DNA of 64,000 nt from Phallusia mammillata (taxonomy: Eukaryota), in the NCBI GenBank assembly GCA_965637545.1, contig OZ281498.1:13144001-13208000 (forward strand), given 5' to 3'. This document shows, piece by piece, positions 3,528 to 10,449 of the stretch (its first letter is position 1; each line of letters starts with the position of its first letter). The notes beneath the pieces are model-generated. The model was not told where the DNA came from, made no database searches, and saw nothing but the letters and a program-made list of their open reading frames with translations. A program made the translations under genes and the position numbers.

Positions 3528-5267
3528 TTGACCCATCTAAATGTACATCCAATAGTTCACCTGGCAGATGCACAAACACCTCTAACAAATTCAACAGATA
3601 TAGCTAATAAATTTAATTCATACTTTTCAAATGTTGGCAAAGATATGGCATCAAAGATCATACCTACCACAACCTCGCCATTTAGCTATCTTACAAACTC
3701 CAATAAAAGTTTATTTGTTTTCTTTGACATTGAAGATAATGAGGTGTTCAACACCATTATTAGCCTCAATGCAAAAAAGGCACCAGGACCATATGACTTA
3801 CCTCCGAAAATGGTTAAACTGGCTGCCCCCGCTCTCACACCATTGCTGTGTAGACTGTTCAATGAGTGCGTTGCGTCTAGCACCTATCCCAACTGCCTGA
3901 AATTAGCAAAAGTTATTCCTCTCTTGAAGGGTGGAAATGCTGATGATGTATGCAACTATAGGCCAATCTCCTTACTATCTGTAGTTTCAAAAATATTTGA
4001 AAAAATTTTGTACAACAGGATGATATCATATTTAGACAAATACAACATACTCACGAAATTTCAAAATGGTTTTCGCACACTGCATTCCACAAACTTGACC
4101 ATTACTGAAATCCATGAATCAATTGTTACAGCCCTTGACAATCATTTTCATATATGTACAATTTTCCTTGACCTCGCAAAAGCTTTTGACACAATTGATC
4201 ACACCATCCTCCTTCAAAAACTAGAATTTTATGGATTTCGGGGCAGCACACTTGAATTTTTCAAAAGTTACCTGGCTGATAGAAAACAATACACTTCAAT
4301 TTCAAACCATTCCTCACACAGCAATGACATTACTTGTGGCGTCCCGCAAGGCTCTGTCCTGGGGCCACTGCTTTTCCTCATTTACATCAATGATTTGCCC
4401 AACTCATCGTCCGTTCAGTCAAGACTGTTCGCTGATGATACCTGTCTCTGGATGAAGCATAAAAACTTTAATGAGTTACAAAAATCTGTCAACATTGAAA
4501 TGATCAAAGTTGATATATGGATGCGGACAAACAAACTTTCACTTAATTACGGGAAAACAAAGTACATGATTTTTTCAAACAGCATCTCACACCTCACAAA
4601 AGGACAAGCATTCCAGTTACAAGTCAATGGTCAGATAATAGATGAAACCACAACAATCAAGTATCTCGGAATAATTATAGACAATAAACTATCCTGGCAT
4701 AGCCATATCAAATACATTTGTGCCAAATTAGCAAAAGCCATTGGAATAATAGGAAAATTGCGTTACTACGTCCCAAAGAACATCTTAAAAACAGTGTACC
4801 ATTCTTTAGTTCATCCAATTTTATTGTATGGCCTTCTTTCCTGGGGGTTTGCAAATAAGACGCATCTGCAGCCAATAGTAATTCTTCAAAACCGGGTGTT
4901 AAAATATATTACAAACAGTCCTTTTCGTACATCAACCGATAAACTATACAAACAAACAAACATTCTAAAGATACGTGAAATGCACCAGTTAGAATTAATT
5001 AAGTTCGTTTCCTTGTTTAAAAACAATTTGTTACCTGCAACATTTAATGGTTATTTTCAACAAACGTCAAACGTACATGACCATGAAACAAGGCGCTCTA
5101 ACAGAATGCAGTACCACTTTCCACGTGTGTTATCAACACGTGCCCAACAAACGCTAAAATACGCGTGCATTAAGGCTTGGGACCATATACCTGATCATAT
5201 AAAACAACTCAGCCTGCCACAATTTAAGCGTGCTGTCAAAACGTTCCTTCTGCAAGAATACACATAA
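3528..5267 (+). CDS. 5'-truncated LINE ORF2 (reverse transcriptase plus C-terminal domain), CR1/L2/Crack group
   Basis: Uninterrupted 579-aa ORF with RT motifs NYRPISLL, QNGFRTLHST, FLDLAKAFDT, GVPQGSVLGPLLFLIYINDLP, FADDT and KYLGIIID. The C-terminus has HDHETRRS...IKAWDHIP...FKRAVK. No APE endonuclease domain upstream, so the copy is truncated; the ORF-track start codon is not a real start. Confidence 0.95.
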   Translation: MTHLNVHPIVHLADAQTPLTNSTDIANKFNSYFSNVGKDMASKIIPTTTSPFSYLTNSNKSLFVFFDIEDNEVFNTIISLNAKKAPGPYDLPPKMVKLAAPALTPLLCRLFNECVASSTYPNCLKLAKVIPLLKGGNADDVCNYRPISLLSVVSKIFEKILYNRMISYLDKYNILTKFQNGFRTLHSTNLTITEIHESIVTALDNHFHICTIFLDLAKAFDTIDHTILLQKLEFYGFRGSTLEFFKSYLADRKQYTSISNHSSHSNDITCGVPQGSVLGPLLFLIYINDLPNSSSVQSRLFADDTCLWMKHKNFNELQKSVNIEMIKVDIWMRTNKLSLNYGKTKYMIFSNSISHLTKGQAFQLQVNGQIIDETTTIKYLGIIIDNKLSWHSHIKYICAKLAKAIGIIGKLRYYVPKNILKTVYHSLVHPILLYGLLSWGFANKTHLQPIVILQNRVLKYITNSPFRTSTDKLYKQTNILKIREMHQLELIKFVSLFKNNLLPATFNGYFQQTSNVHDHETRRSNRMQYHFPRVLSTRAQQTLKYACIKAWDHIPDHIKQLSLPQFKRAVKTFLLQEYT

Positions 5268-6482
5268 AGTTCATACCCTGTCTTGTTTTTGTTTGTTGTC
5301 ATAGTACCACGTGCTGCTTTGTAAACATTCCCCTCTAGATCAACTCGGCAATCGTTTGCCAACATGAGCGTCAATTGCCTCAGTGACTGAAAACTTTGCC
5401 TAAAGCGTGTTATTTGGTGTTATTGCTATTCTTATTATTTTCACAACGTTTCATCATAAATATCTGTTAGCATTTGTTTCGTAAAATAATGTAATGATTC
5501 TTTCATAACAAATTTCTTCACCTGTCTTTGTTTATTTATTTACTTACAATAATAAAATAAGCATCTTCACTTTCAAATGTACATGTATACTTGTCTACGT
5601 TCACGTTTTGTTTTTGTTGTCGCAGTACCACGTGCTTCTTTGCAAACATCCCCTCACGACCAACTCGGTAATTGATTGCCAAAATAAGCGTCGATTGCCT
5701 CAGTGAATAATTTTCCTAAAGCGTGTCATTGTTACTATTTTCACACCGTTTCATTATAAAACACTGTTTACATCTGTTTCCACCCGATCCGTCTGGAAGT
5801 CCCCGATTAAAATCGGCTGTGTTACGCAGAATAATGCGTTTCTTATCGGGCGGGATTAGAATCTTTAGAACCTGTGTTATAACACAGCCCGATTGCGGAC
5901 GGTTTTATCGGTAATGGCAGTGGAGCATTAAATTTGTTTTTTATTGGCAAATATTATTTTTGCTGTGATAATAATCGCAGGTAAATTGGGTTTTATATCA
6001 AAATGGCAGTTGATTGTAAAACAGCAAGACAAAAACAAATGCATTCTAAGCTGTGAAACGAATATGTTAAACACTAAAATGAGCCAAGAATCAAGATTGA
6101 AGTACCTGATTGGCATCAAGGTTCTGGCAATGAAGCAATGCAAAGAGACCTTTCAGTGAGAAGAATTTCAAGTTCTTACCTTTGTATGAAGCAAAGTGAG
6201 GACCAGCACACTATGTCATATGAGGGCTTGTAGATTGGATTTGAATTGAAATGATTTACAGTAAGTGGCTGCCTTGTTACTGCCTTTCTAAACTCAACTC
6301 TTTCTGTATTTCTGGCTGATGTTATTTTGAATTTTAGCACAGTTAAAACCCCCAATATTGAATATTAACTCTGTTTTATAACACTTGACTGCTTATTGGT
6401 GGCTAAACTCAAGCCTCTTTTGTTTAACCCATAATTGTCAAGTCAAATGAGCATACACTTTATCTTTATTTTTTTATTGCAG

Positions 6483-7330
6483 TTCACCATCCGGGAAAAA
6501 TGCTTAAAGCTTGAAAAAATCAACAGAAACATTCCATATCAAAAAAATTGAAGAAACTCTTTCATTGCGGAAGAATTTTGTCGACAAAAACAGCTCTCTC
6601 TTAAAGTGTCAGCAAAATCATTGATGTATACGACCTGTTACTTGCCTCACAGGAGAAAATTGTATGTCGAGATATGCACCACATACTTTAGTTTTACATG
6701 AATCAAATCGGAATATGTGTTATTTCTTTTCCACTGTTCTACCTGCCTGCAAGTTTATTTATTAGTTCTTATACCCAAATTAAGAATTTGTATTCAAACA
6801 TTTGTAGGCGTTGATATTATTTTACCTCCATGGTGATTATGGTCTCATGTAAATTCTGAGAATGTTTTGCACTCTGATGTAGAATCGGACAGTAAACGTG
6901 ATTCATCAGACATAAATTGACAACCTCTAATTTTGACCAGTAGTCTGCATGATAGCATGTTGTAACAATTGAGTGGTTCAACCTCATCTTTCACATGATA
7001 TCCGGTTTAATTTTCTTGATAATTCAGCAAATCATTACATTTTCAGCTGTACAATATTGTTTCACCTTTTTGTTTTATTTTAGTCTGTTTACTTAAAGAT
7101 CCTTGTTTAGTATGTACTATGTACTTGTAAATGCAGGTTTTAACTGACCAATCAACCAATTGCTGTGAATGTAATTATTTATTCTCTTCCCATTTATTTC
7201 TGCTTTCATATAACTATGGGACTCAACTTGAAAATGTTGAAGTGTGGAAATTGGGTTCATAAGGTGCTTTTTCCATCAATAAAGTGTTGTCCTCACTGTG
7301 CATTTGGTGTTTCATCATTTTCATTAGTAC
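6483..7330 (+). pseudogene. Decayed spliced gene fragment in the left foldback arm (mirror copy on - strand, about 8665-9512)
   Basis: Acceptors at 6482 (ttttattgcag), 6807 (tttgtag) and 7136 (atgcag); donor GTATGT at 6662. Broken reading frames include KKIEETLSLRKNFVDK..IDVYDLLLASQEKI, ALILFYLHGDYG and IYFCFHI..VHKVLF. Stops and frameshifts are present. Confidence 0.4.
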
Positions 7331-7374
7331 AGGCTTTAACGTGTTTGAGACCACTAACGACTTGAGGTATATGT

Positions 7375-8620
7375 AAACGGTTTTTACACGCCAACTCTAA
7401 ACAACATTCAGTAAACGCATGCAAAATATCGTTANNNNNNNNNNNNNNNNNNNNNNNNNNNNNNNNNNNNNNNNNNNNNNNNNNNNNNNNNNNNNNNNNN
7501 NNNNNNNNNNNNNNNNNNNNNNNNNNNNNNNNNNNNNNNNNNNNNNNNNNNNNNNNNNNNNNNNNNNNNNNNNNNNNNNNNNNNNNNNNNNNNNNNNNNN
7601 NNNNNNNNNNNNNNNNNNNNNNNNNNNNNNNNNNCTCGAAAATGAGAGGCGTGCATCATAAGCGAACGCAGGACATGACCGCTTTAAAAATGATTTTTGC
7701 GCTGTCGAATTATGTAGCCTATAAAAGCTCCAGATTTTAAACGGTTAAAGATAAACACAAACGGTTTTCACAGATCAACTCTAAAATACATCCAGTAAAG
7801 GCATACAAAATGTCGTATGAATCTGATCATAACCTCGTAAATGAGAGGCGTGCATCATAAGCGAACGCAGGGCATGACCGCTGTAAAATGATTTTTGCGC
7901 GGTCTACCCATATAGCATGTACAGGTTCCAGATTTTAAACGGTTTGAAGTTATTATCACATTTAAACGATGTTTTGTATGCGTTTACTAGCTGTATTTTG
8001 GAGTTGACCTGTGAAAACTGTTTGTGTTTATCTTAAACCGTTTAAAATCTGGAGCTTGTATAGGCTACTTAATTCGACAGCGCAAAAATCATTTTTAAAG
8101 CGGTCATGTCCTGCGTTCGCTTATGATGCACGTCTCTCATTTACGAGGTTATGATCAGATTTAAACGATATTTTGTATGCCTTTACTGGATGTATTTTAG
8201 AGTTGACCTGTGAAAACCGTTTGTGTTTATCTTTAACCGTTTAAAATCTGAAGCTTTTATAGGCTACTTAATTCGACAGCGCAAAAATCATTTTTAAAGC
8301 GGTCATGTCCTGCGTTCGCTTATGATGCACGTCTCTCATTTACGAGGTTATGATCAGATTTAAACCATATTTTGCATGCGTTTACTGAATGTTGTTTAGA
8401 GTTGGCGTGTAAAAACCGTTTGCGTTTACCTTAAACCGTTTGTCATCTGGAGCTTTTATAGGCTACATAATTCGACAGCGCAAAAATCATTTTTAAAGCG
8501 GTTATGTCATGTATTCGCTTACGACGTACGCCTCTCATTTTCGAGGTTATGATCAGATTTTAACGATATTTTGCATGCGTTTACTGAATGTTGTTTAGAG
8601 TTGGCGTGTAAAAACCGTTT
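7375..8620. repeat. 199-bp satellite array at the foldback core, inverted about an axis near 7946-7960
   Basis: Anchor GATCAGATTT at 8153, 8352 and 8551 (period 199). About 3.3 units on the right; oppositely oriented units on the left (7375-7434, 7635-7945). Confidence 0.92.
7435..7634. other. Assembly gap (200 N) inside the satellite
   Basis: Run of N. The flanks fit a true size of 15 bp plus n x 199 bp. Confidence 0.99.
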
Positions 8621-10449
8621 ACATATACCTCAAGTCGTTAGTGGTCTCAAACACGTTAAAGCCTGTACTAATGAAAATGATGAAACACCAAATGCACAGT
8701 GAGGACAACACTTTATTGATGGAAAAAGCACCTTATGAACCCAATTTCCACACTTCAACATTTTCAAGTTGAGTCCCATAGTTATATGAAAGCAGAAATA
8801 AATGGGAAGAGAATAAATAATTACATTCACAGCAATTGGTTGATTGGTCAGTTAAAACCTGCATTTACAAGTACATAGTACATACTAAACAAGGATCTTT
8901 AAGTAAACAGACTAAAATAAAACAAAAAGGTGAAACAATATTGTACAGCTGAAAATGTAATGATTTGCTGAATTATCAAGAAAATTAAACCGGATATCAT
9001 GTGAAAGATGAGGTTGAACCACTCAATTGTTACAACATGCTATCATGCAGACTACTGGTCAAAATTAGAGGTTGTCAATTTATGTCTGATGAATCACGTT
9101 TACTGTCCGATTCTACATCAGAGTGCAAAACATTCTCAGAATTTACATGAGACCATAATCACCATGGAGGTAAAATAATATCAACGCCTACAAATGTTTG
9201 AATACAAATTCTTAATTTGGGTATAAGAACTAATAAATAAACTTGCAGGCAGGTAGAACAGTGGAAAAGAAATAACACATATTCCGATTTGATTCATGTA
9301 AAACTAAAGTATGTGGCGCATATCTCGACATACAATTTTCTCCTGTGAGGCAAGTAACAGGTCGTATACATCAATGATTTTGCTGACACTTTAAGAGAGA
9401 GCTGTTTTTGTCGACAAAATTCTTCCGCAATGAAAGAGTTTCTTCAATTTTTTTGATATGGAATGTTTCTGTTGATTTTTTCAAGCTTTAAGCATTTTTC
9501 CCGGATGGTGAACTGCAATAAAAAAAATGAAGATAAAGTGTATGCTCATTTGACTTGACAATTATGGGTTAAACAAAAGAGGCTTGAGTTTAGCCACCAA
9601 TAAGCAGTCAAGTGTTATAAAACAGAGTTAATATTCAATATTGGGGGTTTTAACTGTGCTAAAATTGAAAATAACATGAAATACAGAAAGAGTTGAGTTC
9701 AGAAAGGCAGTAACAAGGCAGCCACTTACTGTAAATCATTTCAATTCAAATCCAATCTACAAGCCCTCATATGACATAGTGTGCTGGTCCTCACTTTGCT
9801 TCATACAAAGGTAAGAACTTGAAATTCTTCTCACTGAAAGGTCTCTTTGCATTGCTTCATTGCCAGAACCTTGATGCCAATCAGGTACTTCAATCTTGAT
9901 TCTTGGCTCATTTTAGTGTTTAACATATTCATTTCACAGCTTAGAATGCATTTGTTTTTGTCTTGCTGTTTTACAATCAACTGCCATTTTGATATAAAAC
10001 CCAATTTACCTGCGATTATTATCACAGCAAAAATAATATTTGCCAATAAAAAACAAATTTAATGCTCCACTGCCATTACCGACAAAACCGTCCGCAATCG
10101 GGCTGTGTTATAACACAGGTTCTAAAGATTCTAATCCCGCCCGATAAGAAACGCATTATTCTGCGTAACACAGCCGACTTTAATCGGGGACTTCCAGACG
10201 GATCGGGTGCTGTTTCATAGAAATAATGTAATGATCTATTCATAACATATTTGTTTGCCTGTCTTTGTTTTATTATTTACTACAACACTTTCGCAACATA
10301 CATGCATGTTTATTTTTTGTTGTTGTTCAATATAGCTTATCAGTTGTCTTGCAACCCTTGAATTGTTCAGGGTCAGCTCCTGTATAACCACTTGTGGTTC
10401 AAGCTGATCCTACGTAGTGTCATCACGTAAATAAATGAATTGAATTACT

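Follow-up and report, generated by a model that had tools for sequence, protein, structure and literature searches.

The '2-TIR' copies of Galileo, a transposable element of Drosophila, carry a 7-bp target site duplication (TSD) and terminal inverted repeats (TIRs) so long that they can form the whole element. Their TIRs contain tandem repeats of about 200 bp, the number of which differs between the two arms, and these copies are further known for nested transposable elements, for a minority with unrelated 7-mers at the ends and for assembly gaps between the TIRs (PMC3573991, PMC4168063). A second group of foldbacks comprises FB/FB-NOF of Drosophila and Tm1, a Mutator-type foldback of Meloidogyne with 9-bp duplications (PMC3169594). 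Here we describe an element that occupies positions 5781-10209 of a 64,000-nucleotide stretch of the tunicate Phallusia mammillata (hereafter the window; C5:13144001-13208000 of a 240-Mb, eight-chromosome assembly). With considerable confidence, we regard it as one copy of a young family of foldback DNA transposons that move by cut-and-paste, exist in many copies in this tunicate genome and are non-autonomous.

The tunicate element resembles the Galileo '2-TIR' copies in every trait listed above. It differs from Galileo in that no transposase-bearing copy was found, in a target preference much weaker than the GTANTAC of Galileo, in having its repeats at the centre and without the terminal motif, and in its host, a chordate. 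With FB/FB-NOF and Tm1 it has in common that arms-only copies far outnumber coding ones, that the element is hairpin-forming and that the arms hold satellite repeats. Those foldbacks, however, have 9-bp TSDs and repeats that reach almost to the tip, whereas the tunicate foldback has a 7-bp TSD and a unique arm of 1.59 kb. The family is new and well documented but of a type already known, and its kinship with P and Galileo is only partly supported.

Architecture of the element and its insertion site

An inverted-repeat search resolved 5781-10209 as a near-palindrome of 4429 bp. Three inverted pairs, 5781-6312/9678-10209 (532 nt, 99% identity), 6319-6475/9521-9677 (157 nt, 99%) and 6469-7434/8561-9526 (966 nt, 100%), abut one another and jointly place 5781-7434 against 8561-10209 at 99-100%; when anchored to a reference, the two arms of this copy differ at 7 of 1648 sites (0.42%). 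The inversion runs on through a set of 199-bp repeats (7635-7888 against 8093-8346, 96%), so that the palindrome spans the whole element and not just 1.65 kb at either side. The first-pass annotation, which had been made from the letters of the stretch, had proposed a near-perfect palindrome of 4.4 kb with almost identical arms of about 1.65 kb, and both parts of that description hold, with the symmetry extending further than it had supposed.

The 199-bp repeats were reported by TRF at 7949-8620 with 91% matches. When the unit was mapped back, it was found in one orientation at 7375-7945 (that of the left arm, minus strand) and in the opposite orientation, that of the right arm, at 7946-8620 (plus strand, 3.4 units). 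The element consequently reads as a unique left arm (5781-7374, about 1.59 kb), the left array, the right array and a unique right arm (8621-10209), without a unique centre. Its ends are CACCCGATCC.../...GGATCGGGTG, that is, the CAC and GTG that had been read at the tips before, and in a longer reading the tips are CACCCGATCCGTCTGG... on the left and ...CCAGACGGATCGGGTG on the right. The heptamer CTGTTTC stands directly outside both of them, at 5774-5780 and at 10210-10216. The longest open reading frame (ORF) within the element measures only 71 aa, in keeping with the earlier observation that it lacks a transposase ORF, and an Rfam search of the element gave no match.

When the central 712 nt (7635-8346) were folded as single-stranded DNA, a single hairpin was predicted at -337 kcal/mol (z = -46 against shuffles). 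Its poorly paired tip lies in the 89 nt between the inverted arms (7946-8034), next to the point at which the repeats switch orientation (7945/7946). This predicted hairpin is the one basis for the suggestion that the element may form cruciforms or double-stranded RNA.

A run of N at 7435-7634 breaks the left-arm array. Position 7434, at the left edge of this gap, mirrors 8561, while position 7635, at its right edge, mirrors 8346 (96%) or, one unit off, 8545 (89%) or 8147 (91%); the sequence on either side of the gap thus has one orientation and runs collinear with the right arm. Depending on the pairing, symmetry would put the missing length at about 214, 15 or 413 nt, where the assembly gives a nominal 200. 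Because the numbers of units are unequal between the two arms of gap-free copies, we leave the length of the gap at about 15 + 199k nt. The region codes for nothing, and no reading frame depends on this length.

The element sits in the 3′ tail of a LINE (long interspersed nuclear element) that carries a reverse-transcriptase ORF of 579 aa (3528-5267, plus strand; Pfam RVT_1, E = 5.9e-30), which agrees with the host proposed in the first-pass annotation. Downstream of this ORF, the LINE tail unit of about 320 bp occurs twice in tandem with about 85% identity (5286-5780 and 10210-10281). The first unit, delimited by direct repeats and alignment at 5286-5544 (plus strand), is intact and has a single TTGTTTC at 5474-5480, and the second is split by the element, with CTGTTTC on both sides. 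The uninterrupted paralogous unit is thus an internal empty-site control for the target duplication, and the heptamer that it holds once is what is expected if, as had been argued, the duplication arose on insertion.

A young family with a fixed target duplication

The 27-nt end of the element, which occurs twice in the window and in none of 100 shuffles, was used as a probe of the whole genome with up to three mismatches and with the reversed sequence as a control. This census, one of the checks that the first-pass annotation had called for, returned 124 matches (61 forward, 63 reverse) against 0 for the control, and the exact 16-mer end had 112 matches in the genome. The family comprises about 60 copies at 97-99% identity. 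The copy in the window and 27 others from the genome make up a set of 28 complete copies, which range in size from 2430 to 9902 bp.

A perfect 7-bp TSD flanks 21 of the 28 complete copies; three more have one mismatch, and four have unrelated 7-mers at their ends. When TSD lengths of 4 to 10 nt were tried on all 28, only 7 ever matched, so the duplication length read at the first locus is that of the family. The duplicated heptamers all differ from copy to copy, and the differing flanks and TSDs argue against the copies being segmental duplicates. The target pattern, taken from 65 unique flanks, is weak: it consists of a purine at the first TSD position, five positions that are mostly A/T and a pyrimidine at the seventh, together with a T three bases outside the TSD (position -10). 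What characterizes foldbacks as a class is found here, namely arms that make nearly the whole element, a TSD of fixed length at unrelated sites and a common form that is devoid of a transposase. The earlier proposal of a recently mobile, non-autonomous foldback is thus supported.

Two of the sequences, L008 (C54) and L022 (C2:20462865), represent the same insertion with an identical flank, and C54 is probably an unplaced haplotig. We also observed facing foldback ends with no other end between them at C4:17906305-17935622 (29.3 kb), C8:9471605-9500980 (29.4 kb) and C2:14017441-14031439 (14 kb). A spacing of 29.3-29.4 kb is seen twice, and these far-apart pairs may mark giant copies, copies with heavy nesting or a segment that has been duplicated. 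A metagenome search with the 27-nt end gave no match, and our literature search found no paper mentioning both foldback elements and ascidians.

Coding capacity was searched in the 28 full copies and in single ends; the far-apart pairs (29.3, 29.4 and 14 kb) were left out. No coding copy was found among the full copies or the sampled single ends, all of which carry the same full arm, and this was also the outcome of the search for transposase-encoding copies with the same termini that had been recommended at the outset. Because no copy encodes anything, we take the foldback to be mobilised in trans. The large copies were considered as possible coding copies and rejected, since the ORFs of the 9.9-, 8.1-, 7.2- and 6.5-kb copies have no Pfam match and the centres of two of them, L047 and L031, consist of the long terminal repeat (LTR) of a retrotransposon. 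The 1.2-kb centre of L047 (2976-4208) and the 5.5-kb centre of L031 correspond to a separate repeat with about 130 candidate matches. Direct pairs of this repeat lie about 9.47 kb apart at many loci, which identifies it as the 1.2-kb LTR of a retrotransposon of about 10.7 kb that has entered the repeat centre of at least two foldback copies. In L031 (2389-6939) the LTR flanks a 4.25-kb piece with coding-like tandem repeats of 45/85 bp and a 254-aa ORF without a Pfam match.

Differences in size between copies stem mostly from the arrays, where each arm holds between 0 and 8.2 units, and otherwise from nested insertions. Gap-free copies have the two array orientations directly abutting. Unequal exchange or slippage within the 199-bp arrays may have produced the differences in array length.

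Candidate transposases and alternative readings

A DDE transposase encoded elsewhere would bind the ends of the element, probably at four CCCGAT motifs that lie within 115 nt of the tips, excise it and cut the target with a 7-bp stagger. Each end has four copies of the motif in its outermost 115 nt, at element positions 3, 22, 65 (on the other strand) and 108, and the stretch at 5781-5895, which begins CACCCGATCC..., is accordingly a candidate transposase-binding region. Four occurrences in the first 140 nt compare with 0.07 expected, none of 2000 shuffles reached four, and CCCGAT is absent from the remainder of the 2.26-kb arm. A search for both tips at most 60 nt apart returned a single 41-bp derivative (C2:7920663-7920703), in which 28 nt from one tip adjoin 13 nt from the opposite one; a product of this kind is expected when gap repair is aborted after excision. 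A search for an inversion partner of the chimeric copy L036 found none with exchanged flanks.

The most likely mover, put forward tentatively and as yet unproven, is a transposase of the P superfamily that makes 7-bp duplications, as in Galileo and 1360, and a transposase of a type not yet described carries a similar weight. That P is the best guess follows from elimination on TSD length. TSDs of 7-8 bp are the mark of P, Galileo and 1360 (PMC4168063, PMC7776569), and the foldback has a TSD of exactly 7 bp. Dada elements lack TIRs, target small-RNA genes and have TSDs of 6-7 bp (PMC3706591); they were rejected, the foldback having perfect TIRs and varied, unrelated target heptamers. We likewise rejected hAT and CACTA/CMC for an element whose TSD is 7 bp only and whose end is CACCC. 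Elements of hAT have an 8-bp TSD and YARNG ends, and those of CMC a 2-4-bp TSD and CACTA-type ends.

In favour of a P-type mover, the P-type elements of the THAP9-like clade also start with CAC, the target positions of the foldback form a weak palindrome, and the genome holds intact P-type ORFs of up to 744 aa. The profile PF12017 has 11 matches in the genome and PF21787 has 52. One P family, A, is present in three copies that are 98.5-99.4% identical (L059, C6:6995482; L061, C3:17509693; L062, C3:17561903), with open frames of 531-744 aa and helix-turn-helix (HTH), RNase H-N, GTP-binding and RNase H-C domains. On C3, the two copies are separated by 52 kb, face in opposite directions and have flanking DNA in common, which places them within an inverted segmental duplication. 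A second family, B, is degraded in this genome, and its terminus ...AGATCAGTG, which is CACTGATCTGGAAAAAAGCC... when read inward, is the only P end that we could read here.

The family A protein itself is absent from the protein collection, where its closest match is 65% identical, and relatives at 63% identity from two ENA samples are complete P elements of 4.6 kb (L069:6906-11496; L070 and L071:6718-11370). Their TIRs of 30-45 bp start with CACTGATCTAAAAAAAAGACTGG, and their termini are CACTGATCT.... The 30-bp TIR of these relatives, CACTGATCTAAAAAAAAGACTGGATCGAGC, is nearly identical to the end of the tunicate P family B (L060:2983); the P TIR is thus shared by different hosts, which is compatible with horizontal spread among marine animals. 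Judged from these sequences, the young P clade of the tunicate genome most likely has short TIRs, other ends than the foldback and 8-bp TSDs. Compared as a group (tunicate A and B, and L069-L071), the P elements of the THAP9-like clade are like the foldback in their CAC/GTG ends, and family A, with its intact ORFs, resides in the same genome. They differ from it in their short TIRs, in TSDs of 8-9 bp, in CACTGATCT... termini as opposed to CACCCGATCC... and in having their own transposase.

Two observations weigh against our explanation as a whole: the search turned up no autonomous copy that has these ends, which leaves mobilisation in trans as something we infer, and four of the 28 complete copies have unrelated flanks. 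Others weigh against a P-superfamily mover in particular. The TSDs of the relatives' P elements measure 8, 9 and 8 bp. Beyond a shared CAC and GATC, the local alignment of the family B end with the foldback end is not significant (shuffle fraction 0.03-0.19). Neither PF12017 nor PF21787 has a match between paired foldback ends, tblastn of the genome's P-type ORFs against all copies gave nothing, and comparison of the P-transposase loci with foldback DNA yielded chance matches of 13-17 nt only. Galileo repeats carry secondary THAP sites (PMC3688188), whereas here no 9-mer is common to the 199-bp repeats and the terminal 160 nt of the foldback. The defining mark of a P-superfamily member would be a P-type gene enclosed by these ends, and none was found in the 28 copies or the single ends.

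The Galileo-like reading of the first-pass annotation therefore stands as regards the 7-bp TSD, the architecture and the lack of autonomy; as regards membership of the P superfamily it is only tentative, no P gene or remnant having been found between the ends. In its full form, a Galileo-type foldback of the P superfamily living in a chordate and still moved by this genome's own P/THAP9-like, 7-bp-cutting transposase, the reading is possible but rather doubtful.

Two further observations concern P-like sequences. A weak P-like match 3.5 kb inside the solo end at C7:15430492 was rejected as chance: two probes found no second end nearby, and sister copies of the fragment are without nearby foldback ends. 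At L065:2058-3129, 430 bp from a transposase fragment of P family B, there is a 205-bp array of at least five units, whose repeat has no sequence relationship with the 199-bp unit of the foldback.

The alternative that survives best is another, possibly undescribed, TIR superfamily with 7-bp staggered cuts, whose autonomous partner either resembles the foldback over a short terminal stretch only or has been lost from the assembly, and we consider it about as plausible as a P-type mover, that is, tentatively plausible. Neither P nor Mutator-like elements (MULEs) can be linked to the element, and CCCGAT is, to our knowledge, not among the recognised sites of THAP domains. Matches to the exact 16-nt end (112) never outnumber those to the 27-nt end at three or fewer mismatches (124), which means that no second family shares the tip. 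On the other side, only P (7-8 bp) and Dada (6-7 bp) among the described eukaryotic superfamilies give 7-bp TSDs, and to invoke an enzyme that is not known is to argue from absence.

It is improbable that the foldback is instead the arms-only partner of Mutator foldbacks (NOF/Rehavkus-type) of this genome, in the relation that FB bears to FB-NOF in Drosophila. The profile PF10551 does give 31 matches in the genome, some of them with long ORFs, and two lie 9-11 kb from foldback ends; however, none falls between paired ends, and those nearby are outside the elements. FB, NOF and Rehavkus elements make 9-bp duplications, whereas in the tunicate family 21 of the 28 copies have a TSD of exactly 7 bp and none has one of 9-10 bp. 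Most of each arm, moreover, is unique sequence, and satellite is confined to the centre.

Weakest of all is the possibility that the palindrome is an assembly artefact, a long-read foldback chimera of a locus with a single true arm, which we can scarcely credit: a 200-N gap does interrupt the copy in the window and nine others, mostly in or beside the 199-bp arrays, but the duplicated heptamer directly adjoins both ends, the LINE tail resumes on the far side of the insertion, divergence between arms amounts to 0.4-4% of sites, which is not expected of an artefactual copy, and 18 of the 28 copies were assembled gap-free with the same structure, so that the second arm is no artefact. This reading is close to refuted. 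The clustering of the gaps at the arrays points to a systematic difficulty of assembly.

Arm homogenisation and consequences for the genome

Within an element, the two arms diverge by a median of 1.4%, as compared with 2.4% for arms of different elements. For 20 elements in which coverage of both arms was good, the partner arm ranked first or second among the 39 others in 26 of 40 cases. Furthermore, 52 variants are private to one element and yet present in both of its arms. These shared private variants exclude independent mutation, and some form of copying from arm to arm must take place, so that the arms of a given element are homogenised with one another. They could be kept identical by conversion or by repair templated on the hairpin, whether in the element where it now stands or in its parental lineage. 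With its 52 shared private variants, the family offers a clean, small-scale case of palindrome conversion.

Foldbacks are hard to assemble, and they are a potent source of inversions and deletions as well as of hairpin RNA. A family of 60 copies at 97-99% identity is a likely source of structural variation in this tunicate, as well as of assembly gaps, which are present in 10 of the 28 complete copies. If the mover were indeed of the P/THAP9 type, the foldback would provide this class of enzyme with an in-vivo substrate from a chordate, and the Galileo architecture would no longer be confined to flies. If it is a Galileo-type element moved by such an enzyme, it would be the first outside the Drosophilidae and a natural THAP9-like substrate in the sister group of the vertebrates.

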